This document shows, one piece after another, positions 1 through 43,200 of a DNA stretch of 64,000 nt. The stretch is from assembly GCA_004431415.1 (NCBI GenBank), contig QPMI01000494.1:310001-374000 (forward strand), written 5' to 3'. Position numbers and translations under genes: made by a program. Source of the stretch: Cyanophora paradoxa CCMP329 (lineage: Eukaryota; Plantae; Glaucophyta). The notes below the pieces were generated by a model. That model was not told where the DNA came from. It saw nothing but the letters and a program-made list of their open reading frames with translations, and did no database searches. The first letter of the stretch is position 1; each line of letters begins with the position of its first letter.

Positions 1-2019
1 AACTCGCGGAGGCGATTTCAGTGTTCACCGTATTCCATTTTCTTATATAATTTTAACTTGTCGGGAAGAGGCATCGTCCCAAGAGGTTTGTTTTCGATCT
101 GTTTTCGATCCTTGATCGTGGTCCTTGAGAATGTTCTCATTTCATCGTATATTTAAATTTTCCAAAACGTGTCCGAGCGAGGAGCCGGGAGCACGGGTGT
201 ATCGGTGGGGCCTTGCATCGTATCGGACCGGTACCCCCGGTGGAGGGAAGAAGGGGGACGGGGGGTACGTATACGTCGCTGACAGGCATTGGCACGGCGG
301 CCTTGCTCACTCTCGACATTAATTATATATGTAATTAATATTTGTTCCAATTGGATCAGCGCCCCGCCGGCGCCGGCGCCGCCCCCACATATTTAGCGAC
401 CCATGCATGCGTCGACCCAGACCATCGGACCGGAGCGGCGCCGCAGCGCGCGCGCCGGGGCGCCAGGGCCAGGGCTAGGTGCCAGTCATACATATACATA
501 TGCATGCACACCTGCGAAGCACCCCCCTCCTCCCCCCCTCCCGCCCTCCCATCCGCCCGCCATCCCCCGCCCCTTCCCGCCTCCCCTCCCCCATAGCTAG
601 ACGCCCCCCCCCCCCCCCCCCCCCGCCAACCCTCCCCCCCCCCCCTTCCCGGCCCCGTCGACGTCCCTCTGTCTGCTTTACCGGCTCTGTCTGCTTCACT
701 CTGCTTCGATTCAAACGTTGAATTATGAGATCGTTTTCGGCCTTGGGGAAAGGAGAGGCCCTTAGGTCTGTTGGTCACTTGTCACAAAATTTTAGAAAGC
801 GAAATTCGTATATCTGAAGACACCTACTACCCCATTTTAGACTCTGGGGAGCACGATGGTCCGGCCCGTTTTCCTATGAGAGGCCTCTAATGGGCAGTAA
901 CAGCACGTCGAAAAGCACAGAAAAGCATTTTCCCGGAAAAAAATAGAAAGCGCAAATCACATTGGCCTTCCAAGTCGAAATTTGAAAATTATTAATTTGA
1001 AGAGACCGCACCCCATTCGCTAGGAAATAGTTTCCAAATTAACGGAGAGCCACGTGGCCGGCCAGCAAATTTGTATGAGTCAGGGTCGTTGTCACAGTGT
1101 GTGCCACGAGGTGGGTTTTAAATATACTTGATGCGTTAGTTGAAAGATTATCAAAATAAACAATTTAAACAGAGCCTTATTACTACGAATTACATTCAAA
1201 TGATTCATAGATAATTATCAACCACCTCCAAAAAGCGCCGAAAGTCGTTTTCATTCAGCTGAGACGACCAATGGGCCCCTCGGGGCCTGTACTCGGTACA
1301 ACTGCGGCCGATTGGGCCCCGCATCGATATCGATATCTGTACCCTTGCGGCACAACTCTGTACCCTCTCACTTGAGTGTGTACCCTTGCCGAGTATACGT
1401 AGACCCCTCTGTTTCTCCTCCCCCCTCCCCCGTAACCGCGCGCGGTTGCGGGCCCCCGTTAAAAAACAAAGAGCTGCCACCCTCACGCCTTGAAGCCCCA
1501 AGACCCAAGGCCACTCCTGCTACGCAGGGACTCGCTTGTCATCACTTCTTCCAATGCTCTCCTCGCTGTCCCCTTCTTGGGGCCGGGTCCTCTGCGGTTC
1601 GGCCCCTGGATGAACAACGAAGGATCGGCTTCTGCGTCGAGCGGATCGCGAAACAACAAATTGAATAACCCTCTGGCAAGAAAATGTGCAATGCGATAGA
1701 ATAGAAGATTTCCTCTGTGATTTCTGCCGGCCATGGGACAGGCCCGCGGCCGCGCGCGACCGCCCGGCCCCGCCTCAAGCTTTCTTGAATATCTGGATCC
1801 GAAAGCCGCGGCCGAGGCCTAGACGGAGACAATACGTCTAAAGATAGAACTGAGGTATCCGTAAAGTGCACGTGTCAAGTCGAGAGATGCGCCTACTGGT
1901 TACGCCGTGCCGGGAACCTATCAGCCATCGCGGCCGAGTATAGCTAGAGCCACCCAGGAAAGTGCGCGTGCGCTAGATCGGAATTCGATTGCATATAGAT
2001 AATTTATACAAAGCCTGTC

Positions 2020-10037: not shown

Positions 10038-12549
10038 ATGGGCTGCGGCGCCAGCAGCGTTTGCGGGGGCGGGGGAACAGCCCCCCGGTCGCCGGAAGAG
10101 GCGGATAACGATCGAGCTGCAGCTGCCATCAGCAACAGCGGCACACGTGATGGCTCAGTTGCGGGGATCGGTGGTCCGGATCACGCGGTGTCCGCTGAAG
10201 AAGCCGCGAGCGCTGCCAAAGTCGCCGACGCAGCTGCAGCTGCAGTAGAGCAGCGCCCGAGCGGGCTCTACGGCATGTGCGGGCCCGAGGAGCTGATGGT
10301 GATCACGCGGGTCGAGTTCGTGCAGACCGCTGCGCAGCTTGCGGGCCTGCTGCGATCAGAGCGTGTGCGCGCGGCTGCGAGCAAAGATCCAGAGAAGGAA
10401 GTGCCGCCGATGCTGCCGGCGGTCGACGACCTGGCGCGGAGAGGGAACGCAGAGCAAGCGCTGCGGGAGCTCTGCCACGAAGGCGCGTATACGTACACGC
10501 GCGGTCCGGCCCCGAGCCGCGCGACCCGTGCGCAGTTCTACGAGCCTTTACGGACGACGGATCGCTCGCGTTCTCTGCGGACGTTGCGGCCCTCGTCCAC
10601 TCCGGCGACCCCGACCTCTGCCGCGCCGTGCGCTCCGCCCCGCCCCGCCCCGCGGCCGCCCCGCCCCGCGCCTCAGGCGCCGCCCGCCCGCGATCGAGCC
10701 GCGCCTCCGCCGCAGCTCGTGGACGCGCTCCTGCGGAAGGCGAGCAAGGCGATGCTGGCCGACCACGCCGTCCTCTCCGCGCTCGCCTACGTCGCGGGGC
10801 ACCTTCCCCCGGACACGCTCACCGCCTCCGACTGGGCCGCCGTCCTCAAATTCGCATCCGAGCAGGCGAGCGGCCGCGCCGCGCCGCGCCGCCCGCCGGC
10901 GCCACCTGAAGGGGCGCGAACGCGCAGGTTGAGCTGCTGAGCGTGGAGGGGCTGGAGCTGGGCCCGAGCGACGCGGAGGCGCAGGTCGCCCTCGAGCTCA
11001 CCGCCGCCGTGCTCGCCGCCTACGAGGCCGCCTCCAGCGCCGCCTCCAGCGCCCCAGCCCCCGCCGCCCCCGCCCGGCCGCCGCTGCCGCCGCCCCCGCC
11101 TCCACCCCCGCCGACCCCGCCGCTACGGTGGCGGAGGTCGGCGACGGCGCCTCTGCCGCCTCGCCGCCCGCCCCCGACACCGCCTCCACCGCACCGGCCC
11201 CCAAGGTCCGATATCACCCCTTCCCCCCCCCCCCCCCCCCCACCCCCCCCCGCCCCCGCCCCGCCCCGCCTCGTCCCCCCCTTCCCGCCCCCCCTTCACC
11301 CCCCCCCCCCCAACCACCGTTCCCCATTCCTCTCTTATTCTTGCCTCCTTCGAACTTCGCCCCCCCCTCCCTTCAATGACTCCCTGGGACCCACTCCCCC
11401 CCCCCCTCCCCACCCCCCCTCCCCCCCCGACCTCCCGAACCCTCCTCCTCCCCCCTTTTACCCTTGGTCGCCTTCCCCTCGTCACTCCCCTCCTCTTCCC
11501 CCGCCCCCCTGTACCCCCCTGCCCCCCCGCGCCGCGCGCCCTCTTCTCTCTTCCTGAAACTGGCGGTGCGCAGGGAAGCGGCTGGATGTCGACGAGAGGC
11601 GCATTGCGGCGCTGAGCGAGAAGCTGAAGCGGCTGGAGGGCCGCGCGAGGGCAAAGGGGTGGTGGCGGGCGGAGGCTGCGGCGGTGGTGGCGGGGCAGGC
11701 GCTTGCGAGCGTCCGCAGCGGCGGCGAGCGCTTCGGGGACGTCGTCCGCCGGTGCAAGGCGGCCGGTCCGACCCGTCGAGCCTCCCGCACCGTTGCCCCG
11801 CCTCAGCTTCGGCCTCGCAGGTCGGATTCTGAAGAAGCTCTACGCGGCGAGCAAGGTCATCATGGAGGGCGTCTCCTCCATGGGCGCCACGACCGTCATC
11901 GACCTCGTCTTCTGGGCCAAGGCGCGCCGCAGCCGAACCGGGGACCCTGCCGGGCTCGTCGTGGCTAGCGCTGACTGGCGGTCCGGACCGCAGGACATCA
12001 TGAGCGACGAGAAGGGGGGCATACTGGAGGCGGCGCGGGAGATGTGGAACGACGCGCGCATCGTCGTCGGCAAGGGCGCGCATCTGCAGGGCCAGAACGT
12101 CGACCCCTGGTCCGATCCGCCCTCGGTCTTGAACTCGACGAGGGTGCCGAGCTGACGGGCGGGGGCGGCGGCAGGTACGCGCGGGCGCGGCTGCTGGGGT
12201 CGCTGGCGGCGGGCGGGCAGCTGGAGGAGCTGGAGGCTCTGCTGCGGGACGGCGGTGGGGAGGGGCTCGCGGACTGCGCCTCCAGCCGCCAGCTCGCCCT
12301 CGTCCTCGCCTCCGCCCTCGTCCGCGTGCGCGCCCTCCACCCGGCCCCGGCGGACCCCGCACCCGTGGCTGCGTCCGTAACCGAGCTCTGCCGGGGCCCG
12401 GGGCAGGTGGCGGAGGGGCCGAGCCCCACCCAGGCGGCGGCGGCGGCAGGGCTGCTCGAGCGTCTCGCCAGGAAGGCGGGGGAGCTGGGCGGGGCGGACG
12501 CGGCGGAGATCGCGGCGGGGGCGCTCGCGCACGTGGCGCGGCTCGACGA

Positions 12550-12585
<36 letters not shown>

Positions 12586-15500
12586 GGCGCGGACGGCGCT
12601 CCAGCGCTTGGCGGAGTACGCCAAGCGGGAGGGGGCGAAGCTCCGGCGGCGGCGCAGGCGGCGGCCTCGGTCAGCGTGGCGGTCGGCTGCCTCGCCGGCT
12701 TCCGGCACGGGGCGGCGCGCGTCATGGAGAACGGCGTCGGGCTCGTGGAGGATGTGGCCGAGCTCGTCGCCGACGTGCCCGGCCTCGAAGGGGCGGCCGG
12801 CGTGGCCGGCGACCTCGCGGCGGCGGCGCGGCGCGCGAAGGATGGCCGCTTCGTGCAGCGCGCCCTCTCCGCCCTCGCCGCCCCCGAGCGGCTCCTGCAG
12901 CTCGCGTCCGCGCCCTCGCCCGCCGCGCCCTCGGGCCCAGCTCGGACGGCGAGGTCGGCGCCCCCGGGCAAGCTCAAGAAGGCGCCGCCCCTGCGCCCGA
13001 CGCCGATGCGGGCCAGGGTGAGGAACGGCTACCTGGGGCGCGTGCTCCAGAAATACAAAGAGGCGGTGCGCCCACAGTCGTCGACCGCCGGCACAGCCTC
13101 AACCTGCTGAGGGGCGCCGGACGCGGGGCGCGCGGGGCGGGGCAGGTGGAGGCTGCGGGGCAGGTGGTGAAGCGGGCGCACGTCCACGGGCGGGAGCAGG
13201 ACCTGGCGGACCCCGGAGTCCGCCTGCTGCTCTCCGACCTTGCCGTCGATCTCTGGTGCGCCGCCCGCCGCCCCGGCCGCCCGCCCGTCGTCCGCCCCGC
13301 CCGCTGAGCTCGGCTTGGCCGCAGCGGCTCGGCGCCTTTCCGCCGCTGCCCGGAGCTGGTGTGCGCGAGCAGGGCGTTCGTCTTCGTTGCAAGCCCCGTG
13401 ACGGCGCGGGAGGTGACATGCCTCAAGGCCCTCGACGAGGGTGCGCGGGGGCGACCCGCTCGTTTCTAGACTCGCTATTCAATTTTCTGATTTCGCCCGC
13501 GCGAGCTTCGCCTCATGGCGCCCGGGCCGCAGCGATTGAGACGGGACAAGAGGTCTTCCAGTTCTACCTGAACGGGGCGGAGAGCGTCCTCCAGGCGATG
13601 CCCGTCGGCGTCGACATGCGCCTCAGCCGCTTCGACCGCGTGCGGGCGGTCCCTCTCTGCCCTTTGACGCGAGCCGACCGAGCCCCCGCAGTGGCAGCTG
13701 GACGTGGAGGCGCTGCGGAAGGCGGACGTGTACGCCGCTGCCCGGTCGAACAAGAAGGACCCTCTGGACGTGCTTGCGAGCGGCGTGCAGAAGACGTGCC
13801 GCTTCCCCCGAGAGTACGGCAAGCCGGCGGCTGGACAGAAGCAGCTGACGACGCGCTGGTTCGGCGGGGCTGGGGGCTCGAGCTCCGGGCAGCAGCCGTG
13901 GCCGTCTGCTCCCAAGTGGGTTGTCGAGGAGTCCCTGACGGCCGAGTCCGACATTCATGCCCGCGTTTTCTTCGCTCACGCCTTGAATCCGAAGGACAGG
14001 GAGATCGTTCAAACGTTCTCCACTTCATTGCAAAGCATCGCGTCTTGCTGGTGCGCCCGTTGATGATGGATCGATCGCATGCACGCGTGAACGTCCGCGC
14101 TGCTTATCATGACGCGGCTCTGCAGGTCAGAGGCCGAGCATTGGGAGAAGGGCGAGCGCTGGGTCGACTTGGGTACGTCTTCCTTGGGGGCAGGTGTCGC
14201 GCATCGCTAACGTGGAATCCTCACCCCTGTCGCAGTGGCGCGCGCCATCCGCAACTGCACGCATTTCGTCTTCATTGTGTCACCCGCCATCGACGGCTCG
14301 CAGGTCAGTGGCCCTTAATCGATTATTCATATTAATATTGAATATCTTGATGACGTGAGCTCGCGGCTTGGCAGCATATCCAGGAGGAAGTGGCGTACGC
14401 GTGCAGCCAGGACTGCGCTCTGGTCGCCCTGTACCTCAAGCAGCAGGGGAAGGCCGTCAGGAGCTCGTGGGTGGAGGAGCGCCTGGAACGCGCCGCGCCC
14501 GGCCGCGTGCACAAAATCGATGCCGCCATCGACGTCGACCCAATAGACGCGGCACTCAAGCTTGCGAACGCTGTGAAAATTCGAACCCAAGCGATCGCGG
14601 CTCGCTCGACCGCAGCCACAGCCACATACGCAGGCGCAACCGCAGCAGGGCAGCGGGCGAGGGCCCAGGCCGGCCAGATCCAGCCAGTGCGTTGTTCCCC
14701 GACCGGCCATCCCTTGTATTTGACCCTGATCGAGCCTCGGAGGCTCGGAGAGCTGATGCGGGCGCCCAGGCAACTGCACTCGGGTGGACGGAGGCGGATG
14801 TCGAGTACTGGATCCGATCGCACGAGCCCCTCGCGCAGTGCGCCGCCTGCAGCCAGCGCCGGCCACAAATATGTATAATATATACAGTTTAACGCCGTCC
14901 GACGGTCTGTTTTTGAAGCAGATTCGCGAAGCGATTCTCCGTCTTGAAAGGAAGGGGCCTCCTCTCACTCACCGACTCGGCCCTGAAGCAGCTCGGCATC
15001 AACCATGTTGCTACGCGTAAGCGATTCCTGCTCGAGATTGCGGCCTTGTCCAAGGCCGCACTGGAGAAGTGCGACAGGAAGGTGCTCAGAAGCTTTGATC
15101 GTACAGGCGCGGCGATCTATATTATCTGACATGCTCCGTGAATTGCCTGGTCCAGCTGGAACCGCTGTGTTGGACCGAAGAGGACGTCGTGGCCTGGGTC
15201 CGCTTGCAGGGTCCCCTCGCAAAGTGCGCACCCCTGTTTTCTCGGATGCTCCACTCTCCGCTGTTGATTGGCGGGATTTACAGATTTGCCGAACTGTTCA
15301 CGTTCACCGGGGGCCCAGGACTGCTCTCACTTTCCGATGTGGATCTCGAGCGCATGGGCGTGGACAACTTCCCGGCGCGGCAGCGTCTCCTCGAAAAGAT
15401 AGCCGAGCTTGAAGCGAATGCAATCGCACAGTCACTCCACAAGAATGCCAAGCCCGAGACTGACACAGCCGCGGAGTCACGAGTTGTCGAGTTGGTGCGC

Positions 15501-18500
15501 TGGCCCTGCCGTGGCCGTTTAATGCGAGTATTCACCGACATGCACGCCGGCAGGCTCCGGCGCCATCTCCTGCCGAGGTCGATGGCATCAGAGCATCAAT
15601 TAAAAAAGTACGCTTGATCATGATGGATTAATTGAATTTGGATGATTTAGATGCTCTTCAATAAAATTCATGCAATGGATCCGGACAGTTTGCGGCGGAG
15701 GTGGCCGACGAGCTCCGCCAGGACCAGGACCTTGCGCTCTACGTCCCGCCCCGCGCCACTCCGGACCCGAAGCTGCCGTTCAAGGTGGCCCCCGGCCCAA
15801 GTTCCCGGCTCTAAACCTAGGTCTCATGTGTGCACGCGGCGTGATGGTGACTCCACAGCATCATGTGGATCTTCACGAAAAGGCTGTGACGTTCCTTAAG
15901 GCGCTGCGGCCCGGCGCCAATGTCGGCGAAGATGCCGCAGCGAAGCCGAAGTCAAAGCGCGTTCTGTTATTGTTGGGTGGCGCAGGCACATCGAAGAGCA
16001 CATTTGTGCGCTTCTTGGAGCGCGACGTCTGCGAACAATGGGCGGAGTCAGAAGACACAGCAGGCCCACAGCTGCCTGTCGTGGTGCTTGTTTCGCTGCC
16101 GCAGCTCGCCGGCATGGCGGGCGGTGTGCCCAAAGGATCCGGACTGCGGCAGCACGTGGCGGCCAAACTTGGTGTCGCAGAGAAGGCGCTTCCAGCTCTC
16201 CGAGACAGGTATGCATCTCGTTTATGTTAACGGTAGCGGCCGTTTCGTTGACGTGTACGTCAGCATCGGGCTCGTGCTGCTTCTTGATGGATATGACGAG
16301 ATGGGCGTGACGGACGGCATGAACCTGTGGCAGGAGAACGGCGTTTCAGACTGGGCGAGCGGCGCACTTCTCACCTGCCGAACGGAGTTTCTCGCGTCGC
16401 TTCCCGTTGACAAGCCGCACGAGGTGCTTTCTCTTTCCTCTACGATGTTCCGCTTTTCTGAGTGCTATCTGATCATGAGTCTGTCAATACTCTTGATACT
16501 CTCGGGCTATCTGAGTCGCGCCTGGCAGGCCTCTTTCGCACCTGCCGAGAAGGATGGTGAAGCCGATCGCGACGATTCGGCTCTGGTGCAGCTGCACACG
16601 GTCCCCTTCACAAACGACCAGGTGTGCCGGGCGGCGCGGAATTCTACATGCAAACGCAACGATACAGAGTTAGAACCGCTTCTGCGCAGCGGGACAAGTA
16701 CCTGCAGCACTACGTCGAGCGCCACGAGAACGACGAGGCGGCATGGACCTTCGAGCAGTACCAGGTAGCCTTTGCAAAGACGCCGGGCCTGGCTGCCTTT
16801 GCGGAAAACCCTTTCTCCCTGTCGATGGCCGCCCGCGTCCTGCCCACAAAGTCCGTCCTTTGTGCGTCCAACTAAAAGATTCCACACTGACATGTACACG
16901 TGTTGCGTACAGGACGGCAACCGGAGGACGGCTCGGCATGCGGGGCCTTTACCGGCTGTTCTTGCGGGACTGGCTGAGGCGGGAGCTGTATCGGGGCGGC
17001 ACCGAAATCCCGCGGGATGCCACAGGTGCGGTGCTCAAGCCTGCATGTTGCTAGCACTTGCAGAATAGCAAACAGTTGCAATCGGCCGCATGCACAGTCC
17101 AAGAACGAGTGGAGGATGACTTTGTCAAGGAGGGGACAGGGTTGTGCACGCGACTTGCATGTCTTCTTTTCCGCGTGCGCTCGACTTTGGCTTCTCGCAA
17201 TCAGTCGAGCACTGGAATTCCATAAACGTTAAATGCGCAGATGTCAGCCAGCCAAGCAATGATCCCGGACCCACGGGTCCAGAGGCAGCAGAAGACGGGT
17301 GCTGAAGTGAACTCGAAGCCCGTAGCTGCTCCCCCCCCAAGCCCAGAGCAGGGCGCTCTCTGCGCGCTGCTGGGCGACCGTGCATTGCTTCTCGTGCGCA
17401 ACAGCTGTCCGTTGCGGCAGTGGAGGCAGGGCGGCTCGCTTGGCTTCGCGTTTGTGCACAAGACGCTGCAGGAGTTTCTGTCCGCGGAGGCACTCCTTGA
17501 CTCGGTGCGTGAAGCAAAGGGGGCAGCAGGGACCTATAGAGAGAGAACGCCGACGGCAGGCCCTGAGGGTGGAGGGCTGTTGTGCAGATAGTCGATTGAG
17601 TTATAATTAGGGCTGTACTGATCGTGACAACTGTCTGTGCACAGTTGTCGAGCAAGGCTACTCCGAGTAATTATAACGGCATCGACATCACATTGCACAC
17701 ACGGTATGCCATTCAATTGCTTGATTGAGCGTCCGATGGACAAGCTTACAGTGACATCGACAACACGCAGGAGCATTGTGGGGGATACGACGCTTGTCCG
17801 ATTTCTGGCGGAGGCTGTCCAGCACGAGCCCCAGGCCATCGTTGCGGACGCTCTCGTGCGGATCATCGAATTGAGTCGGCCGCGGGATTCTTCTGGGAAG
17901 GCAATCGAGAATGAAGCACCAGAGGTAGCCCCGGAGGTTGTTGCAGCGGCGAACGCAGCGACCATCCTCGTCGCTGGTGCGTGCAATTGTTTCATTGATA
18001 GTTCGTGAGTGTGTGCCCTGCCGAGTGAGGTTCTTGCGATGGCCCCTGCAGGCCACTACTCGCTGGCGGGCCGCAACTTGCGGGGTGTGCGTATACCAAG
18101 AGCCAATCTGTGGCGACTGGAAGCAGCAGGTGCAGATCTTCAAGAGGCGGATCTGCGACACTGTGCCGTAAACGAGGCATGCCTGTCGAGTGTGGATCTG
18201 AGAGGTGCACGCATGGACAACTGCTTTGTGATGCAGCATCCGGCATTGCTGCATAAGAGCGCCGTTCGCGCCGTTGCCTGGACACCGGTGCGTGCAGATA
18301 TCCCGCTGCAGCGGTATTGGTGTGCAAGGGAGGTGCAGCAGGGTGGGGTAATCATAGGACAAGCGAGTCTCAGGGTTGTGGGGTCGCTGACAGAAGCACG
18401 GGTGTGCGGCCTGCAGGACAGGAAGTGGATCGTCTCGGGGAGCGATGACAACCTGGTGCGGGTGTGGGACGCAGAGACAGGGACAGAGCTGAGGAAGTTG

Positions 18501-21500
18501 GAAGGCCACAAGGACAACATCATCTCAGTGGCTGTACATGTCTCCACAGTGCGTGAGGGAGGGGCGGGGGTGAGATGTGGTGGAGGACATGCATCTGGGC
18601 GTGCGAAGCTTAAGGCGATGGGTCTGGCCCTGGGCCGTGATAGCAAGCAGTCCCGACACCTAAAGAGTCGCAATCGAGCACGAGCATGGTTTGGGGCCGT
18701 GAAGGCACTGACAGAAGCACGGGGGTGCGGCCCGCAGGATGGGAAGTGGATCGTCTCAGGGAGCAATGACAAGTCGTTGCAGGTGTGGGACACTGAGACA
18801 TGAATCGTCTCGGGGAGCAATGACAAGTCGGTGCAGGTGTGGGACGCTGAGACAGGGGCGGGTCTGCGGAAGCTGCAAGGCCACACAGGCTGGGTAACGT
18901 CCGTGGTGGTTTCAGCGGTGCGCAAGCCCTGAAAGGAAGGGTGGTGACACAGGCCTAGGGGCCCGAATGATGTGGCCCAGTGGGATGGGACTGCATGCCC
19001 GGTGGGGTCCGGTTTGTGCACATTTTAGAGCCACAAGTTTTCTGATGAGGGCGCGGGGCACGGCTTGCAGGACGGAAAGCGGATCATCTCGGGGAGCAGT
19101 GACAAGTCGGTGCGCGTGTGGGAGATGGAGACAGGGGCGGAGATGCGGAAGCTGGAAGGCCACACGCGTAATGTCAACTCGGTGGCGGTTTCGAAGGTGC
19201 GCATGGGAAGGGCTGCAGCGGGGCATCCCAGAAGATGGGCAGTAGGGCCTGCAAAGGCGATGAGGCCGGCGTGGGGCTGGGATAGCTGGTGGAGCGCCTC
19301 CATCTAGACTAGATGGATTTCACGGTCTAGAGAGAGCGAGCTCAAGTTTTGGGGCTGTGGGGTCGCTGACAGAGAGCGGGGGCTTGGCTCGCAGGACGGG
19401 AAGCGGATTGTCTCGGGGAGCGACGACAAGTCGGTGCGGGTGTGGGACATGGAGACAGGGGCGGAGCTGCGGAAGCTTGAAGGCCATACGGGCTGTGTAC
19501 ACTCGGTCACGGTGTCGGAGGTGCGCAAGGGAAAGTTGGGGGCGGGGCGGCTTGGAAGACGAGCTCCAGGTCTTGTCAATAGATGGGAGCGGTGCGGCTT
19601 TTGATTGGTGTGATGCCCAAATAGCAGGCTGAATGGTTCTGGCAACGCTAAGTGGGGTCCAGGGTAGTCACACTGAGTGAGGTTTAGAGGAGCTGTCCAG
19701 TAATGCGGGCGCGGGGCGCGGCTTACAGCTGTTGAGCTGCAGGACGGGAAGAAAATCATCTCCGGGAGTTCTATCTACGACGGGTTCCGAGGAGACAACA
19801 CGCTGCGGATGTGGGATGCGGAGACAGGGGTGGAGCTGCTGCAGCTGCAGGGCCACACGGGCTCTGTCAGCTCTGTGGCAGTGTCAGCGGTGCGTGATCA
19901 TGAGCTTGAGAGAGGCCCGGGGGGGGGGGGAGGGGGGGGGAGGGGGGGGAGGGGGGGGGAGGGGGGGAGGGGGGGGAGCGGTGGCCTGGCCATGGCCTGG
20001 AGGACGTGCAGCGGCACCATCGGATTGCCAAGAGGATGGAGTTGGCATGGAGCTGTGATAGTTGTAGCAGAGGAGTTTCAATTCGGTGATGCAGAGAGGG
20101 TCTAGGGCGAGCATGATCTAGCTATACATTATAGGACACATATAGGGCCGTGCACATGAGGACACTGACAGGGGCACGGGGGCATTATGCACAGGATGGG
20201 AAGCGGATCATCTCGGGGAGCACGGACAAGTCGGTGCGGGTGTGGGATGCGGAGACGGGGGTAGAGCTGCGGCAGCTGCAGGGCCACAAAGACTCGGTCA
20301 ACTCGGTGGCACTTTCAATGGTGCGCAAGGGAGGGGCGGGAGCGGGGCGGCCCAGAGGACGTGCATGAGCCGCTGAACAGGGTGGACTTGCAAAAGGGGA
20401 TGAAATTAATATTGGCTTGGGCTGCAATAGATGTAGCAGAGCTGTGAGCAGTTTCTGCAATGTCGGCACCAGGATGCCTGATGGGCCTGGGGTTCAAGGG
20501 CGAGCAAGTCTCAGGGTTGTGCACATGCACATGAGGACGCTGACCGGGGTGCGGGGGCATGACACACAGGACGGGAAGTGGATCATCTCGGGGAGCAACG
20601 ACAAGTCGGTGCAGGTGTGGGACATGGAGACAGGGGCGGAGCTGCGGCAGCTGCAGGGCCACAGAGACTTGGTCAACTCGGTGGCACTTTCAGCGGTGCG
20701 CGAGGGACGGGCGGGGGCAGGGTGGCCCGGAGGACGTACATGTTCATGTGCAGGGGACTTACAAAGGGGATGAAATTGGCTTGGGCTGCAATAGAGTCTG
20801 GGAGAACGAGATTTGGGGCTGTGCACTTGAGGGCGCTGACGAGGGCATGGCGGCATGACGCATGCGCACAGGACGGGAAGCGGATCGCCTCAGGGAGCAC
20901 GGACAACTCAGTGCGGGTGTGGGATGCGGAGACAGGGGCGGAGCTGCTACAGCTGCAAGGCCACATCTTCTGGGTCTCCTCGGTGGCAATTTCAGCGGTG
21001 CGCAAGAGCGGGGGGTGCGGGGAAAAGGGAGAAGGGGAAAGGGAGGGGAAGGGGGGGAGGGAGGTAAGGGGCCGGGGGGGGGGGGGGGGGGGAGGGAGGT
21101 AAGGGCCGGGGGGGAGGGAGGTAAGGGGCCCGGGGGGGGGGGGGGGGGGGGGCATGAGCCAAGCCGGCTCGAGCCGGACTTAGGCACCGGCAGCTCGAGC
21201 CAAGGCCAGCCGAGACGCTCGAGGGGAACAGCAAGACAGCAAGGCCTGCTCAAGCTGGGTGGGGCATTGTAAGGGGCGAGCCGGCTTGAGATGCTGTCTA
21301 GCGCGGATATTAATTTAGATTTATTATGAATATATCGAATTATATACGACCGGGACTAAGTACCCCCCTCCTTGAGCCTGCTGGCAATTCGGGCTCAAGC
21401 TAAGCCCCACCCCTTTCGATATCTCACAATACAGCGCTAGCAGTGCATATTAAGGCGATAAAGTTGGCAGGGGGCTGCTAGCATGTGCTGCAACTAGCGT

Positions 21501-23437
21501 GTGCAGGCCCTCTGAGCAAGCAAGTTTCAGGGACTTGAATGCACTGACGGGGCACGGGCGCGCTTCACACAGGATGGAAAGCGGATCGTCTCGGGGAGCA
21601 TAGACCACTCGGTGCGGGTGTGGGATGCAGAGACAGGGGCGGAGCTGCTGCAGCTGCGAGGTGAACTGGCCATGGGCTCCATCCGCTCGGTGGCTCTGTC
21701 AACGGTGCGTGATGGAAGGGCAGGGGTGGGGTGGCCCAGGGAATATTAATGTGCAGTGCGGCTTGTGAAGAGGCCTAGGATGGGGCCCGGCGCCTGGGAG
21801 GGCTGCAATGAGGGGTGCAAATTGAAAAGTTTCCGTTGACACCCAACGGGGTCCAGGGCAAGCGAGTCTCAGGGTTGTGAGGGCTCTGACAGGGGCTCGG
21901 GGGCGTGGTGCACAGGATGGGAAGCGGATCATCTCAGGGAGCGACAACGAGTTGGTGCGGGTGTGGGACACGGAGACAGGAGCAGAGCTGTGGAAGCTGG
22001 AAGGCCACATGGGCTCTGTATACTCCGTGGCGATTTCGGCTGTGCGCAAGGGAGGGACGGGGGTGGGGCGGTCTGGAGGACGTGCTGCAGGGCCTACCGA
22101 GTTCCAGATCTAGAGTCATTGGGCCAGCGTGAGGCGAAGTGTACGATAGCGGGGGGAGTGTTTTTGGCAACACTGGGCAGTTATAATTACCAGGGTCGGA
22201 ACAAGCAAGCATGTTTCATGGCTGTTATCAAAGCACTGACTGGGCCCCCGGGACGTGGGTGCATTGCTGCAGGACGGAAAGTGGATCATCTCGGGGAGCA
22301 GTGACAAGTCGGTGCGGGTGTGGGACATGGAGACAGGGGCGGAGCTGCGGAAGCTGGAAGGCCATACGGGCTGTGTACACTCGGTGGCAGTTTCGAAGGT
22401 GCGCATGGGAAGGGCTGGATCCGGAGCAGAGCAGTCCAGAAGACGGGCAGTGGGGCCTGTAAAGGCAATGAGGCCGGCGTGGGGCTGGGATAGCTGGTGG
22501 AGTGCTTCCGTCTAAACTAGATGGGTTTGATGGTCTAGAGAGAGAGAGAGAGAGAGAGGGAGCGAGGTTTGGGGCTGTGGGGTTGCTGACAGAGAGCGGG
22601 GGCTTGGCTCGCAGGACGGGAAGCGGATTTTCTCGGGGAGCGACGACGAATCGGTGCGGGTGTGGGACATGGAGACAGGGAAAGAGCTGCGGAAGCTGGA
22701 AGGCCACACAGACAGAGTCACGTCTGTGATGGTTTCGGCGGTGCGCATGGCCCAGCGGGAAGGGCTGGAGCAGGGCATCCCAGAGGTCGGGCAGTGGGGC
22801 CTGCAATGACAATATTAATGAGGCCGGCGTGGGGCTGGGATAGCTGGCAGAGCACTTCTTGCGACTCGGAAATTTTGAGGGGGTCTGGCATGGGGCCAAC
22901 GTGTTTAGGATGGTTCTGACGGGGGCACGGGGGCATGGCGCACAGGATGGGAAGCGGATCGTCTCGGCAGGCGGGGGCAAATCTGTGATCATCTGGGATG
23001 TGGAGACGGGAGAAGAGCTGCTGCAGCTGGAAGGCCACGGGCACGTGGGCTGGGTCTGCTCGGTGGCAGTGTCAATGGTGCATGTGGGAGGGAGCTAGGG
23101 CGGGACGGCCTAGAGGGCGTGCAGCGGGGCCCGCGGCCTGCAAAGGCAATGGCACAAGCCTATTCCTATGTATCCCTTCAGAGACACGTACACATAACGG
23201 GGCCCGACGGTCCAGGGGAGCTTCCGGCGACGCCCAACGGGGTCCAGGGCAAGCGAGTCTCAGGGTTGTGAGGCTCGAGCTCTGACAGGGGCTTGGGGGC
23301 GTGGTGCACAGGATGGGAAGCGGATCATCTCGGGGAGCAACAACAATTCGGTGCGGGTGTGGGATGCGGAGACAGGGGCGGAGCTGCTGCAGCTGCAAGG
23401 CCACACGGACTCTGTCACCTCAGTGGCGGTGCTGGCG
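10038..23437 (+). CDS. NLR-like STAND protein NLR1: N-acylation motif, helical/ARM-like region, TIR, SAM, SAM, NACHT NTPase, pentapeptide repeats, 14 WD40 exons (3' end unresolved)
   Basis: Starts MGCGASS. TIR at 13962-14580: RVFFAHALNPKDREIVQTFSTSLQSIASCW|SEAEHWEKGERWVDLV|ARAIRNCTHFVFIVSPAIDGSQ|HIQEEVAYA. SAMs at 14770-15081 and 15156-~15420. Walker A LLLLGGAGTSKST (~15976), Walker B LVLLLDGYDE (~16270), then LLTCR, NPFSLSMA, FVHKTLQEFL, AAANAATILV, pentapeptide LAGRNLRGVRIPRANLWRLEAAGADLQEADL, and WD40 exons at 18417-23437. Confidence 0.9.
18417..23437 (+). repeat. Array of 14 highly similar phase-0 WD40 exons of NLR1
   Basis: Exons 18417-18548, 18738-18917, 19071-19196, 19395-19520, 19743-19889, 20195-20320, 20570-20695, 20872-20997, 21573-21704, 21916-22041, 22273-22398, 22615-22740, 22946-23077, 23312-23437; each runs cag|GAY...|gtgc and is a multiple of 3 long. 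Confidence 0.95.
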
Positions 23438-25794
23438 GTGCGCGAGGGAGGGGGGTGGGAGTGGGAAGACGTGCGGCGAGATTATTTCAATAAAACGCTG
23501 ACCGATGAGAGCAGAATAAAGTTTTTGCGCGATACGCTTCGGGCGCCCAGAAAGCGTGGACCCTTCGAGTCGAACGGGGGGCTCTGTCTGTTCAGGAAGT
23601 CCTGGAGGGGGATGAGGCGTGGGCCCAGGGTTCCGGGCAGGCGGAATTGGTCGACGAGGATGGGACACATCCACTGCCTTTCCACTGGAATGGGCCCCTG
23701 CACGCATCTGCTGCCCTTCCAGTGCGCCCGCAACCGCCCCCATTGGACAGGCTGGGGCCGCCCCCATTTCAAGTTTGACAGAAGCGGCTGCAGGGCGGCG
23801 GGACGCTCTTTGCCATCGCCAGCCCGGCGGGCGTTTCCGTTGAGCGTGTCCCGGTGCGGCCGGCACCCTCAGCATGGCCCATAAATTCAGCATACCCTGA
23901 GCGGAAGCCCTCCGCAGGCCTTCCGCTGCACGCGGCGCATCCAGCAGACGGCAAGCCTGGAGGCTCAGGGGGCAAAGGTCCGCAGTCGCCCCCTGGCGCC
24001 AAAATCTTCCAGTCGGCCGCCCTCTCGAGCTCAGAGCCGCCATGGACGTGCCGCAGATGGATGCGGCGACGTCGATGGAGCCGCGCCTGCGTCGGCTGCT
24101 GCTGCAGCTTGGCGCCGTCAATGTCGAGGAGAGCGCCCCGCAGCCCGCCCCCGAGTAACTGGGGAGAGCTAACGTTCACTTCTCAACGGAGGCGCGGCGT
24201 CATAACTTATTTCTTTTCAGATGTATCCCTGCATATATATCCTGCAATTCAGTGTGTGTTTGCATGGCTGTTGTGATGGGCCCCTCTAGCAACATAATAA
24301 TAATAGTATGCCTTCAGCTGCAGATTCGGTTCGAATTCAATTTATTGGCCTGTGGCCAGCTGCAGTACGTATACGCGAACGCATATACTGGCCGTGGGGG
24401 AAGGAGGATGCTTTTTGTGGAATTACTTCCAAACTGCTTCCATTAAGCACTAGTACTCGCGTGATGGAGCGTGCAAGGGGCCCCAAGATTGCTTAAGTTG
24501 CCACGCGCGTATTTGTTTTTGATGAATTACCGGCCACAGTTTCAAGATCTAGACATCAGCACTGCGGGGGTTGTCCAAGGGGCACAGGGACAAAGAAACA
24601 AAATTACAAAGACAAGAGCACGAATAACGACAAGACATAGAGCCAAAATCGACAATAAAGAAGGAAAAACACAGAGACAGATCGAGAAGAGACGATAATT
24701 AAAATAAGAAACCGAGACCGAGCAGATCTAGTAACAGATCTAGATGACAATAGTACTAGAGATTCCATCAACAACTGAGGGACCGGAACTGAGGAGGTGA
24801 AGCAGGACAATGCAAAAGAGCGGATCATTAAAGCCGGCCGGCGCCGGGGCGGGCAGTCGAACTGCAAATGACGACGAACTACAGGTCCGGATCCAGCACG
24901 AGAACAAGTCCTAAAACTCGGCGAACTCCAGAACAAGAACAACTCCAGAACTCCGAACTCCGAACCAGCACGAGAACAAGCTTAAGACAAGTCCGGCACG
25001 AGAATCCGACTCGGCGAACCAGACCGAACTAAACTACAAGACGGAGATCTAGAACGCCGGTGCCGGCGGAATACGATCAGGGAAGCAGAAGACGAAGCGA
25101 GAGGCGGCGCCGGCGGTCGGGTACCAATTGCAAGAACAAGGGCCGGAGGGTCCGGCCCCGCAAACCGCCGGAGGGAACCAGAAGGAGACGCAGGCTCGGC
25201 AAGCCGGCGACGGGTGCGACCACGAGTCCGGGCAAAGATCGGGAGAGGGCCCGGGAGCAGGGCCAGGAGAAGTCAAGCCCGGCGAGAAATCTGACCCGGA
25301 ACCGGAACCCAGCGAACGGCGACGACGAAGAGGCCCCCGGAGAGCCAAGACGAGCTATCGGGCAAAGCACTGACAGCCGGAGTCAAGCAAGGCGGAGAAA
25401 GTACCCCGCACACAGGAGCCGCTAAGCAGGCGGAGAGTCCAGGGCCGAACAGGACCACAAGAGTTCAGATCTAGAGACCCAACGACGTCGATGGGGACGC
25501 GGCGGAGGCCTAGGGAATTGATGGATCTCTCGTCACGGTATTGATTGAAAATTTTAGAGGAGCAAAGAGTGTGCTTATTTGATACTGTTTAAAAATTTTG
25601 AATACTCACGCGTAGCGTAGGCGCGTAGCGCCTTGAGCTCGGCGAGATTTAGATAGGTTTTGGACCGTTTTTTGCGTGAAACACGACGTACCCCCCCGCC
25701 ACTGGCGGCCACTGAGTGGGGTGCCAGTGGGGGGGGGCCACCGACTCAGTGGGGTCGGACCGCCACTACGCCCACCCCTAGTCCCGCCCACGGC

Positions 25795-40200: not shown

Positions 40201-43200
40201 TCGACGCCGCCCTCGACTCGTTCGCAGCCACCGGCACCGCGCCCTGTGCTGGCAGCACCGATCGCCGCGTGCTCCTGCTCACTGGTGGGGCTTTTTAGCC
40301 GACCTCCTGAAATCCCTTCTGCTGACCTACGCCCTGCCCTTGCAGGCGACTCTGGGTGCAGCAAGACGACGAGCCTGCGCCAGCTCCACCGGCGACTGCT
40401 GGAGCGGTGGAGGCCGGGCGTCCCCTTTCCCGTCTTCGTCTCCCTGCCCGTGGTCACGGCGTTGGGCTCGAGCCTCGTCGACAAGCTCGTCGATGCGACG
40501 GGCCTGCAGGAGGACGATCGGGATCGCGAGCTGAAGCAAGAGCTTAGGCAGAGGTGCGCAGGCAGCTCCCCCCGCCGATCCATATATACCCGCTTGATCC
40601 GCAGAAGTCCATGCTTGTGCTGAGTCCGCCGCCAGGGTCAAGCTGCTTGTGCTGCTGGACGGCTACGATGAGGTATGCGCCCGTGCGGATCCTGACGCAA
40701 ATGCGCCGCACCACGGGTTTGATTCCCAGTCTTGCAGGCCCGGCTGAGCCACGCCTTACACTACCTTTACCCGAAGCTCAGCTCGTGGGCCGCCCGCGTC
40801 GTCGTGGCCTGCCGCGCCCAGTACCTGCCGAGCCTCGGCATGGATCACAAGGTTCGAATTAATTACAAATCTACAGTTCCCGACGTTCAACCCCCTGCCG
40901 TAGAGTTACTTCTTGCTGGAGCAATCGGATGATTCGAGCCAGCTCTGCGAGGCATGGACTTGCTCGTTCAACCAGGACCAGATCGGGGCATACGTGCAGC
41001 AGTGGCTCGGCGTCTACCCAGACCCCGAGCACGACTTCGACTGGTACATGAAGCAGATCAACACGATCCTCGGCCTGCTCGACATCATCCGCACGCCCTT
41101 CGTCCTGTCAATCGCCTGCAAGGAGCTTCCATCGATTGGCGCTAAGCTGTGCGCCATGTGGCTGTGCCTTCGTATTGTTTCGAGAGGCTGAGACGGGTCT
41201 GGGTGGCTGCAGGATGGAGAAGCAACATGATGGCTCAAGCTTCGCGCGGGTCCTGATGCGCGATGTGTACAACGCGTTCGTCACCGGGCTATTCAGACGG
41301 GAGGAACAAAAGCGCGCAGAACAGAAGTGCTTCGCAAACTTCGCTGTCAACTGCCGCAAGTTCTGCCGATCTGTCGCCGTTCTGATGGACAAGCAGGTGC
41401 GCGCCTTGGACTTACGGCAGTGCCATGCTTTGCTTACGACCCACACGCTTGATTAATATTGGACGGCAGGCCACGACGGTCTTGCAAGTAGACATGCAGC
41501 TCTCCTTTGGTGTGCTGAATTCAAAGAAGCTGGGCGCGGCGGGTGCAGACGCGGCCGATCCCGCTGCGAAGGCCGCAGCGCTGCTCACTAGCGAACGGAG
41601 CGCGGAATTTCTCAGAGCCGCTCCAATCAGACCGACGTGGGAGGAAGACGGAAAAATCTCGTACAGCTTCATACACGCTTCCCTCAAGGAGTACTTTGTC
41701 GCCGACAGCATTCTCCCCTACCTCGATGCCCGCCTCGCAGCGCAGCCGGCCGCGGGATCCCAGCGGCGCAGATCCGCCATGTGCGGCATCTCTTTAGCTT
41801 CGTGATGATAATCTCGTCTTCCTCTTCCGCTTAGCGCTGGTCTCTTTTAATTGTCGCAGGTGGAATGTGGGTGGAGCGGACGTGGTGGATGGGCTCGGCC
41901 GCCGGCTGCTGGTGGACGACTCGGCCATCGTCCAGTTCCTTGCCGACCGTGCCCGCTCCGAGCCGCCCTTCGCAGAGGTTCGAAGCTGCCGCGGCCGTGT
42001 GCGACGCCTCTTTCCTCGCCCTGTCTGATTCGATCACATTGACAGGCACTCTGGGCGTGCCTGCTGCAGTCCGCTAACGGCGGTTCGCCCATCGCAGCTG
42101 CCAATGCGATGACTGTCCTGAATCACGGTCGGCACTGGCCCCATATGCTCTAGGACGCGTTCCCTGCACTAATATATATCCGCAAAGCGGGCGCATCGTT
42201 TGCGGGGAAGGAGCTGCGTGGCATTCGGGCGCCTGGGGCCGACCTGTTCCGACTCGAGGCGGCTGGGGCGGACCTGCGCGGCGCGGACCTCAGCGGAGCG
42301 ATTCTGGACGAGGCGAACGTGGCGGGGGCTGACCTGCGGGGCGCAAACCTCGACAACTGTCACCTCAGCGTTTGGCCTGCGTGCCAGCTTGGGTACGCAA
42401 CGCGCTGTGTCGCATTCTCGTCGGTGCGTCTGCCTTGGGTATATATGGGGCTCATAATGATGTCTAGGTCTAGGGTTTCATGACTGTGGGCTGACAAGCG
42501 TAAGACTGCTCTCTGGTTTCACGCTCTGCATTCCAGGATGGGCGCTCGGTCGTTTCGGGTTGCGAAGATGGGACGATCTGCATTGTAGATGCCGAGAGTA
42601 GATCCTTAAGCTTCAAGGCGAGCTTTAAAACTGTGGAATCCGTCGCATTCTCTGCAGTGTGTCTTTGCTTTGAAAATGCAAATGACCGCTTGGCGCCTGC
42701 TGAACGTGTCACAGGACGGCAAGAAGCTGGCGTGGGGCGATGCAGGTGGAGTCGTGGGCCTGTTCACATGGCCGTGGGATGTGCCGGGAGGGATGCGCGT
42801 CCCTCTAAAGCTGAAGGGGCACATGAGGGTTGTTACCTCCGTGCTTTTCTCGCCGGTGCGAAGAAGAATTTGGAAAAGCTTGAAAAGTTATATAATGTTG
42901 TATTTCACTGACGCTTCTCCCGGCAAGTAGGACGGTTCGACTCTGGCGTCGGGCAGCACTGACGGGACCGTGCGGCTCTGGAGCGCAGCAGATGGCACGC
43001 TGCTTCGCGTTCTCGAGGGGCGTGGGGACACTGTCCGCTCGATAGCGATCTCGCCGGTGCGAACAACTGCAATTCAAGCTTAAGGCACATGCATATGAGA
43101 ATGGACCTGTCGGTGACGGTTGCGGTTCGCTCAGGATGGCAAGATGCTTGCGTCTTGCTCTGATTCGGAGTCTTTGCGACTGTGGAGAGTGGCGGACGGG

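Follow-up and report, generated by a model that had tools for sequence, protein, structure and literature searches.

Why should every repeat of a WD40 domain be encoded by an exon of its own, and does this layout contribute to variety among the repeats? The question is raised by a gene of the glaucophyte Cyanophora paradoxa CCMP329 in the window analysed here, which is the whole stretch of 64,000 nt at positions 310,001 to 374,000 of the forward strand of contig QPMI01000494.1 (assembly GCA_004431415.1). All coordinates given below are those of the window, and all features described for this gene lie on its forward strand. As a whole, it is probable that the WD40 region is the C-terminal domain, with a putative ligand-sensing role, of an expressed NLR-like (STAND) gene, whose blades are diversified at the level of DNA.

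Architecture of the gene and of the WD40 array

The order of domains is SAM, NACHT-like NTPase, pentapeptide repeats, 14 WD40 repeats and a short tail. The SAM domain (15138..15614), which is located upstream of the NTPase, matches Pfam SAM_2 above the cut-off (E=1.1e-5). The P-loop NTPase region (15686..16845) is split by introns and was assigned to the same gene by ORF translations and tblastn. Its translations contain the Walker A sequence GGAGTSKST and the Walker B sequence LLLLDGYDEM; the NACHT motifs were defined as a Walker A of the form GxxGxGKS/T and a Walker B of the form hhhhDGhDE, N-terminal to the repeats. Residues 270-530 of the paralog P0011, corresponding to its NTPase, are 43-53% identical to the window (tblastn), and the Pfam NACHT match to this paralog is sub-threshold (E=9.7e-5, 22.7 bits against a cut-off of 26.7). 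Searches of PDB and NCBIfam gave no match for the NTPase. On the motifs and the sub-threshold match to the paralog, the region is best described as NACHT-like. The pentapeptide repeats are encoded by an exon at 18051..18287 (Pfam Pentapeptide, E=2e-6; RNA joints 17975>18051 and 18286>18416), the 3′ end of which encodes the first strand-a-like segment (..AVRAVAWTP), ahead of blade 1. Downstream of the array, the last coding exon (23515..23778), reached by RNA joint 23436>23514 in contigs X1 and X4, encodes on translation a non-repeat tail of 87 aa and the stop codon. No HET domain was found in this gene, which has SAM instead, and the paralog P0011 has the architecture TIR-NACHT-pentapeptide-WD40x14, in which the NACHT match is the sub-threshold one. 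These assignments suggest that the gene is part of an expanded family of STAND genes in which TIR and SAM domains occur.

The 14 frame-neutral exons at 18417-23437, one per WD40 unit, that were described in the initial annotation were reproduced by a regex and translation scan, and their borders coincide with RNA joints. All are phase 0-0 with lengths that are multiples of 3; each is immediately preceded by AG and followed by GTGC(G/A). The length is uniform, 10 of the 14 being 126 nt if exon 2 is taken in its RNA form, and one 42-column scaffold aligns all units. Exon 1 (18417..18548, 132 nt, phase 0-0) has RNA joints on both sides, and the ORF that contains it matches Pfam WD40 (PF00400; E=1.2e-8, 35.5 bits against a cut-off of 27). 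The scan and RNA joints together define exons 3 (19071..19196), 4 (19395..19520), 8 (20872..20997), 10 (21916..22041) and 14 (23312..23437), all of 126 nt, as well as exon 5 (19743..19889, 147 nt), which has an insert of 7 aa (IYDGFRG) in the b-c turn, exon 9 (21573..21704, 132 nt), in which GE and an insert of 2 aa replace GH, and exon 13 (22946..23077, 132 nt), the most diverged unit (SAGGG, GHGHVGW). Exon 6 (20195..20320, 126 nt) was defined by the scan and RNA joint 19888>20194, and exon 7 (20570..20695, 126 nt) by the scan and RNA contigs. The exon border falls in the a-b loop (S|DG), so that each exon covers strands b, c and d of its blade together with strand a of the following blade. 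The window contains a second, more diverged WD40 array (42715-45598), which shares the phase-0 border, S(P)|DG, and likewise carries one repeat per symmetric-phase exon.

By homology with the modelled paralog P0011, at 60% repeat identity, the 14 repeats are predicted to form a tandem propeller domain. An AF2 model of the P0011 array (pLDDT 79.8) has four-strand blades every 42 residues, and its best match in PDB is 2ymu, a 14-repeat WD40 propeller protein of Nostoc punctiforme (44% identity, E 2e-57); Apaf-1 also matches. Each of three paralogs has 14 repeats, and the solved structure that the modelled fold matches is itself a 14-repeat propeller, from which it can be argued that the number of repeats is constrained.

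Recombination and variation among the blades

DNA recombination reshapes the array, as had been supposed in the initial annotation. A two-unit segmental duplication is evident, in which exon 3, intron 3 and the 5′ part of exon 4 resemble exon 11, intron 11 and the 5′ part of exon 12, with homologous introns; introns 3 and 11 are 81% identical over their full length. By alignment, the 5′ part of exon 12 (22615..22740, 126 nt) and the tail of its upstream intron match those of exon 4. Exon 11 (22273..22398, 126 nt) is a mosaic, with similarity to exon 3 over nt 1-30, nt 114-126 and the intron that follows, and to exon 4 over nt 45-106; the alignment shows a central GH-TGC-V-H patch common to exons 4 and 11. 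The mosaic structure was significant in a two-breakpoint permutation test (p=0.0012), and the PHI test gave p=0.017. Since both breakpoints lie within exon 11, exon borders are not privileged points of recombination. Homology between introns extends over ~30 nt at either flank, and the intron interiors are largely unalignable. Among repeats of three paralogs, 39 of 40 are closest to repeats of their own gene, each gene having its own fixed scaffold residues, and no exchange between paralogs was seen at the protein level. The array is less strongly homogenised than fungal HIC arrays, because the mean nucleotide identity of the exons is only ~77% (range 65-90%) and dS is ~0.48.

These features fit a probable model in which a DNA unit of one exon and one intron was duplicated in tandem to build up the array, which would explain why each repeat lies on its own phase-0 exon. 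The similarity of the scaffold within a paralog would be kept by within-gene homogenisation and purifying selection. Residues of the b-c turn, of the d-a loop and at the beginning of strand a differ between blades, with indications that dN exceeds dS at the 3-4 strongest positions. New combinations of blades would then arise in the germline by unequal crossing-over of exon-intron units and by gene conversion in patches shorter than an exon, and the mRNA would join the WD40 exons constitutively in genomic order.

The columns of highest entropy are SGSx, Dx, GH+1..3 and VxS, and every triplet after GH, each residue at the surface site that follows and the IYDGFRG insert agree exactly with the first description. 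When the repeat register is aligned to two published HET-E numberings, these columns correspond to HET-E positions 10, 11, 12, 14, 30 and 32, equivalent to Paoletti codons 7, 9, 25 and 27, and the HET-E-type sites flanking the conserved V after GH and the D of SGSxDx take entropy ranks 1, 2, 3 and 6 of 42 columns. In Podospora HET-E, these WD40 positions are under positive selection; the earlier observation that variation is concentrated on them thus agrees with both the entropy and the matched numbering. The same columns are most variable in the paralogs P0011 and P0178 (Spearman 0.64 and 0.47), and repeats 3 and 10 of P0011 have 7-aa inserts at the same turn as the insert in exon 5.

In an ML partition codon model, omega_rest for the scaffold was 0.16-0.2, and omega was 2.18 with p=0.007 at the 4 strongest HET-E sites and 5.4 with p=1e-6 at the 3 sites R1-2/R1/D-1, values that compare paralogous repeats of one gene in which recombination breaks the assumption of a single tree. 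For the full set of seven HET-E positions, omega was 1.22, which is not significantly above 1 in the ML test; the site-wise dN/dS check suggested initially thus indicates an omega above 1 at the 3-4 strongest sites (omega 2.2-5.4) but not for the full set. A tree-free test on 7 disjoint pairs gave dN_hot/dS_all of 2.0-2.7 (p=0.007 to 6e-4), a range also given as 1.6-2.7, and NG86 at the hot codons themselves gave an omega of ~0.9. If the scaffold has been homogenised and old blade-specific residues have been retained, dS is underestimated, and the signal of omega>1 could reflect conserved blade-specific contacts rather than diversification that still continues.

A neutral or structural explanation would take the array for an ordinary WD40 scaffold, in which the loops are less constrained or make fixed blade-specific contacts, diversifying selection and a repertoire are absent, and the exon-per-repeat layout is a fossil of amplification. 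Top-face loops differ between blades in any WD40 protein, and the omega of the seven positions together, the NG86 value and the indication from dS and the intron interiors that the array is not young are all in keeping with this explanation. It is nevertheless unlikely, because two different tests place dN at the 3-4 strongest positions above the dS of the whole exon, three paralogs share these hypervariable columns on a scaffold homogenised within each gene, and a patch of hot sites has moved between exons 4 and 11. The probable membership of the gene in the expanded STAND family, in which TIR and SAM occur, also argues against it. Of the favoured explanation, in which the WD40 region is a sensor domain, the exons, the order in which they are spliced, the variable columns, the mosaic structure and the grouping of repeats by gene are observed; that the gene acts in immunity or recognition, that ligands bind to the variable face and which way selection has acted are inferred.

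Splicing of the array and the structure of exon 2

GT..AG joints occur at 12 of the 13 inter-exon borders in the RNA-type contigs X1, X4 and X7, which derive from three studies, and the joint between exons 6 and 7 is absent among the 15 joints listed, out of 17. The joints into exon 1 and out of exon 14 are those at 18286>18416 and 23436>23514. The DNA run X15 contains zero splice joints across the array. All 15 joints listed connect neighbouring exons, and none of them skips an exon, in contig-level data that may hide rare isoforms. The combinatorial diversity by alternative splicing that the initial annotation had envisaged is therefore unsupported; the available RNA joins the exons in genomic order. 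The variety of the blades traces to DNA recombination, with no mixing of exons seen so far.

The WD40 exons might instead be interchangeable cassettes, which are skipped or combined by alternative splicing or somatic recombination to yield many isoforms, in the manner of Ectocarpus ROCO LRR exons, human NLRP3 exon 5 and DSCAM. All 14 exons have the phase, length and loop borders by which the loss of one exon would remove one blade cleanly, and cassette splicing is documented for the LRR exons of Ectocarpus ROCO genes and for NLRP3; moreover, contigs drop rare splice variants, and the evidence covers the 15 joints listed. Despite these points, such use of the exons is very unlikely: in three RNA studies every joint listed is between adjacent exons, and products with 13 blades would probably close badly, given the three 14-repeat paralogs and the 14-repeat propeller match. 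The proposal that any exon can be skipped stands for the reading frame, but the probably constrained number of repeats argues against it. Frame neutrality is also a necessary by-product of exon duplication and is not evidence of use, as has been argued previously (PMC3341825).

Exon 2 (18738..18917) measures 180 nt in the DNA but 126 nt in the RNA, as defined by TRF (period 54), translation, and DNA and RNA contigs. The initial description needs correction here: the DNA contains a 54-nt tandem duplication (18750-18803 / 18804-18857; 94% matches) with an in-frame TGA at 18801-18803, a stop codon that had been missed. The duplication is also found in the independent DNA contig X15, and the RNA contigs X1/X7 are without the 54 nt. 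The stop-containing 54 nt may be removed from the RNA as a candidate mini-intron (18783..18836; GTGTGG..GTGCAG) that was created by the duplication: its excision would leave an open exon of 126 nt and predicts 2 mismatches relative to copy 2, which matches X1 record 1. The least probable explanation, that the stop codon and the duplication confirmed in DNA make this copy a transcribed pseudogene in decay, is opposed by RNA contigs of two studies that lack exactly the stop-containing 54 nt, by the open and correctly spliced state of all other exons, by the low omega of the scaffold, and by a 2.4-kb spliced RNA contig that spans upstream exons into the WD40 array.

Relation to known receptors and implications

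The closest parallels are with HET-E, HET-D and HET-R of Podospora anserina (HNWD), in which WD40 repeats of 42 aa on a conserved scaffold likewise follow a STAND NTPase. In HET-E, as here, hypervariable residues flank the V after GH and the D of SGSxDx, and a double-propeller model has been proposed. In HET-E, dN exceeds dS at these sites; here the 3-4 strongest of them, compared among paralogous repeats, point in the same direction. Within-gene concerted evolution by unequal crossing-over or gene conversion is also common to the Cyanophora gene, HNWD and fungal NLRs with highly internally conserved repeats. On the other hand, the fungal receptors carry HET as the effector domain, whereas the Cyanophora family has SAM and TIR; repeats are 65-90% identical in nucleotides here and ~90% or more (near-identical) in fungal HNWD; and in Podospora mixing occurs between genes. 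The published descriptions consulted for the fungal arrays mention no splitting by introns, and a Mortierella relative (P0240) has its array encoded without introns, whereas here each repeat is a separate exon. The fungal receptors act in self/non-self recognition, a role that is putative for the Cyanophora gene. By analogy, the Cyanophora gene may work like HNWD receptors, but is not a member of that family, because it has no HET domain and its repeats are only 65-90% identical. Bacterial NACHT-WD40 STAND genes are also intronless and have other effector domains, in contrast to the exon-per-blade layout of Cyanophora; one such relative, P0151, a metagenomic bacterial-type protein with 41% identity, has the architecture Mrr_cat-NACHT-pentapeptide-WD40 with a precomputed NACHT match and an array encoded without introns.

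In exon organization, a fair analogue, as pointed out initially, is provided by candidate immune receptors of Ectocarpus, those of ROCO type and of NB-ARC-TPR type, which also have one repeat per symmetric-phase exon, and for which it has been proposed that exons are duplicated and shuffled, with diversifying selection acting on the ligand face (PMC3341825, PMC11378527). The repeats of these receptors are LRR (72-nt, phase 2) or TPR, however, whereas those described here are WD40, and the lineages are unrelated, Ectocarpus being a stramenopile and Cyanophora a glaucophyte. A genome screen in Ectocarpus limited shuffling to LRR and TPR loci (PMC3341825). Duplication and movement of whole exons, the feature by which shuffling is judged in Ectocarpus, is seen here in the two-unit segment, yet breakpoints also lie within an exon, and multiple splice variants are reported for Ectocarpus ROCO, whereas none was seen here among the joints listed. 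Members of the human NLRP family are similar in that the sensor repeats of a NACHT receptor lie on uniform in-frame exons with the same structural border, a uniformity on which in-frame skipping of exons depends (PMC6642158). Each NLRP exon, of 171 nt, encodes two LRRs, and alternative splicing of these exons has been shown experimentally, whereas WD40 blades must close propellers and no exon is skipped in the joints listed here.

It is very improbable that the exon-per-blade layout is actively used, either because blade exons are skipped, repeated or somatically recombined under conditions such as biotic challenge, or because duplications within exons, like that of 54 nt in exon 2, provide cryptic splice sites. 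If this is true, each of many NLR-like genes would give rise to a repertoire of propeller sensors, and diversification similar to that of DSCAM and VLR would exist in a unicellular glaucophyte.

The WD40 exon array and its splicing

Fourteen WD40 units were recovered at 18417-23437 on the (+) strand by a regular-expression and translation scan, each preceded by AG, followed by GTGC(G/A), open in phase 0 and of a length divisible by 3 (126 nt in nine units, 132 nt in three, 147 nt in one and 180 nt in one, as counted in the DNA). The initial annotation had described frame-neutral cassettes with one exon per WD40 unit, and this is confirmed; the scaffold, the triplets after GH, the variable residue following these and the insert IYDGFRG were all recovered as it gave them. 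Its description stands for the 14 frame-neutral exons (E1-E14) and needs correcting for exon 2, which holds a 54-nt duplication and an in-frame TGA. A tail exon (23515-23778, (+)) codes 87 residues and a stop codon.

Contigs of three RNA-type runs, each from its own study (X1, X4 and X7), and of a DNA run (X15) were aligned to 17900-23700. At the predicted borders on the (+) strand, the RNA-type contigs show GT..AG joints, which connect the pentapeptide exon to E1 (18286>18416), each of E1-E5 to the next exon, each of E7-E13 to the next exon, and E14 to the tail exon (23436>23514); the X15 contigs over 17900-23700 show no such joint, and E6>E7 does not figure among the 15 joints listed. All 15, from three RNA studies, join neighbours and none skips an exon, so that the proposed combinatorial diversity by alternative splicing is unsupported in these assembled contigs, from which rare isoforms could escape. 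A splice isoform of Apaf-1 with an extra WD40 repeat is known, and is not used as evidence here. Because a 2.4-kb X1 contig extends from the upstream exons into the array, the transcript is a long spliced mRNA. At 20581, 21971 and 23404-23410, loose ends of both RNA and DNA contigs match a conserved exon and then enter different WD40-like sequence; this shows that further family members exist and are transcribed, and that contigs from short reads jump from one paralog to another within these repeats.

Contigs break at long G-rich low-complexity tracts in introns 5 and 8 (19919-19978 and 21032-21152), and in intron 8, which is 575 nt long, there is an AT-rich stretch as well (21290-21400), unlike its surroundings and possibly a small insertion. 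A length divisible by 3 is found in nine of the 15 introns within or flanking the array (binomial p=0.03); neither of the first two (18288-18416 and 18549-18737) contains an in-frame stop. For P0178, a paralog protein, the public gene model includes inserts of 36 and 44 residues that have ..LQ at their end and coincide exactly with two SP|DG borders; they resemble in-frame introns taken as coding in the annotation.

Exon 2 (18738-18917) holds a 54-nt tandem duplication at 18750-18857 (TRF period 54, 94% matches), the junction of which makes an in-frame TGA (18801-18803). A CAG|GT site is doubled too, leaving 18783-18836 with GT at its start and AG at its end. The X15 contig, from DNA, contains the duplication with no difference; in X1, from RNA, the exon's initial 12 nt are joined to the second copy (2 mismatches), and the X7 RNA contig likewise continues as though the 54 nt were absent. 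Collapse of the two copies during assembly is unlikely to be the cause of the missing 54 nt, because they have no 31-mer in common. Excision of 18783-18836 (GTGTGG..GTGCAG) leaves an open 126-nt exon 2 and predicts exactly the 2 mismatches of X1. This segment is a possible newborn mini-intron, a candidate that would be shorter than the nearby introns of 75-77 nt. Exon 2 entered the repeat analyses in its RNA-supported 126-nt form.

Domain order, paralogs and predicted fold

Upstream of the array and on the same strand are a SAM domain (Pfam SAM_2, E=1.1e-5) and ORF pieces with a P-loop (GGAGTSKST) and a Walker B motif (LLLLDGYDEM), and a pentapeptide-repeat exon (Pfam E=2e-6) is spliced straight onto E1. 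NACHT was not recognised by Pfam in the ORF fragments of the window, and was not found via NCBIfam or PDB sequence search. With exons searched singly, one exon was used as a query against 1.84 billion representative proteins; no protein entry among the results was flagged as encoded by the window, and the paralogs P0011 and P0178 were found. P0011 (EukProt model tig00020801_g13965.t1), the closest 14-repeat relative from this search, has the order MGC-TIR-NACHT-pentapeptide-WD40x14, in which the TIR and NACHT matches are under the Pfam cut-offs. Its NTPase region matches the window by tblastn at 15686-16845 (43-53% identity) and also at about 40774-41971, the NTPase region of a second NLR-like gene with a WD40 array at 42715-45598 (+). 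This second array has 12-13 recognisable WD40 exons of 123-156 nt, all divisible by 3, with the S(P)|DG phase-0 border of E1-E14 and much more diverged repeats. Since a diverged array has the same border, the exon-per-repeat layout predates the homogenised E1-E14 array.

An ORF at 10038-10940 (+) starts with MGCGASS, P0011 with MGCKSG and P0178 with MGCCVSS; the MGC start is an N-terminal Gly-Cys acylation-type motif. The N-terminal region of P0178 also matches 11657-12077. The gene with the 14-exon array may start near 10038 and span ~13.7 kb.

The WD40 domain folded was that of P0011, from an alignment of 25 fourteen-repeat relatives, and stands in for the spliced protein of this gene. The model (mean pLDDT 79.8) has four strands per 42 residues and, about halfway along, a break of low confidence. 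Its top PDB match is 2ymu, a 14-repeat 'highly repetitive propeller structure' (44% identity, E 2e-57), and Apaf-1 and the two-propeller Aip1 also match. When the strand pattern is compared with the sequence, the exon border corresponds to the a-b loop, SGSxDx to the b-c turn, GH+1..3 to the d-a loop and the VxS residue to the second residue of strand a, and WDx starts the c-d loop. The first three variable groups would sit on the top face, with WDx opposite, a placement on one face that rests on the model strand pattern and textbook WD40 topology rather than measured geometry.

Variable positions, selection and recombination

Of the 42 columns in the scaffold, VxS has the highest entropy (2.84 bits), ahead of SGSx (2.41), GH+3 (2.35) and GH+1 (2.12); next come the exon's last residue and Dx, and then GH+2 and WDx. 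The same columns vary most in P0011 and P0178, with 13 full repeats each (Spearman 0.64 and 0.47). In Podospora, positions 10, 11, 12, 14, 30, 32 and 39 of the 42-aa repeat have high dN/dS (PMC12222747), and the strongest four are codons 7, 9, 25 and 27, each pair of which flanks a conserved consensus residue (PMC1805685). The two numberings appear to map to the same columns here, with the register taken from motif arithmetic. The HET-E-like hypervariable positions of the initial annotation are present, the top-entropy columns matching the Podospora positions.

Pairwise NG86 estimates gave a dS of about 0.48 and an omega of 0.46 overall and 0.35 for the scaffold; a variant using the hot codons' own synonymous sites (omega about 0.9) was set aside, as it involves 3-6 saturated codons. 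A GY94-type maximum-likelihood model, in which two site classes shared their branch lengths, was used along with a tree-free check, in which dN at hot sites was compared with exon-wide dS in seven disjoint nearest pairs. Omega was 0.16-0.2 for the scaffold and 1.22 for the seven HET-E positions (p=0.36 against omega=1; tree-free ratio 1.6, p=0.02), and these two classes differ at p=2e-21. For the four strongest positions, omega was 2.18 (p=0.007; tree-free 2.0, p=0.007), and for the R1-2/R1/D-1 triplet 5.4 (p=1e-6; tree-free 2.7, p=6e-4). These comparisons are between paralogous repeats of one gene in which recombination is present, and the same dN/dS picture could arise if old, conserved residues specific to each blade sat within a homogenised scaffold. 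For these reasons, diversifying selection at the hot positions is likely rather than established.

Recombination as a source of diversity, which had also been proposed, is shown by a two-unit segmental duplication and a mosaic exon 11. Exon pairs have 65-90% nt identity; introns have ~30 nt of homology at each splice site, which declines to background by 40-50 nt, and some are homologous end to end (81% for I3 vs I11, the introns after E3 and E11). The block of E3, I3 and the 5′ part of E4 matches that of E11, I11 and the 5′ part of E12, and is a two-unit segmental duplication. At 21 sites differing between E3 and E4, E11 reads 333333 44434444444 3333 (two-breakpoint permutation p=0.0012); because its middle sites are of E4 type, the central patch, including the hypervariable codons, derives from the E4 type. 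The PHI test across all exons gave p=0.017, and in a GENECONV-like scan of pairwise runs no pair was significant after correction for 91 pairs. The segmental duplication and the mosaic exon show recombination acting on exon-plus-intron units and on sub-exon patches, and exon borders are no special recombination points. Repeats group by paralog, share scaffold residues that are fixed within their gene and specific to it, and number 14 in each paralog, a pattern that points to concerted evolution within genes, with repeat number constrained.

Relation to known receptors

P0151, a bacterial-type metagenomic relative (Mrr_cat-NACHT-pentapeptide-WD40), is encoded by an uninterrupted gene (L001 2468-7744) that overlaps the stop of a MarR-like gene, and the Mortierella relative P0240 (ARM-like-...-pentapeptide-WD40; L002 1501-7238) is also uninterrupted. 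The intron-per-repeat layout is therefore a feature of the algal family. The simplest explanation would be that the amplified unit already contained one intron. The intronless relatives also raise the question of the source of the NACHT-pentapeptide-WD40 core.

The array resembles the fungal HET-E/HNWD sensors in its variable positions, concerted evolution and recombination, but differs in that it lacks a HET domain, its repeats are less identical and it contains introns; by analogy, it would work like these sensors, without being a member of their family. It has the exon-per-repeat design in common with the Ectocarpus genes of ROCO-LRR and NB-ARC-TPR type, and with the LRR exons of human NLRP genes, but its repeat type is WD40 and alternative transcripts are absent among the joints listed.

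NLR-type receptors with hypervariable, internally conserved sensors (WD40, ANK, TPR) are found in fungi, and exon-per-repeat receptor genes (LRR, TPR) in brown algae and vertebrates. Both designs come together here in one glaucophyte gene; glaucophytes are a deep branch of the plastid-bearing Archaeplastida. In the searched literature, there was no substantive pairing of Cyanophora with NACHT genes and none on Cyanophora NACHT-WD40, and one-exon-per-WD40 arrays were not described. The finding does not amount to evidence of adaptive or combinatorial immunity. The locus offers a known splicing order, a mosaic exon that records conversion and a possible newborn 54-nt intron. It suggests that an intron within the duplicated unit provides a long non-coding target for unequal crossing-over, and that surface-diversified propeller sensors on STAND ATPases originated independently, or were retained, in another eukaryotic lineage.
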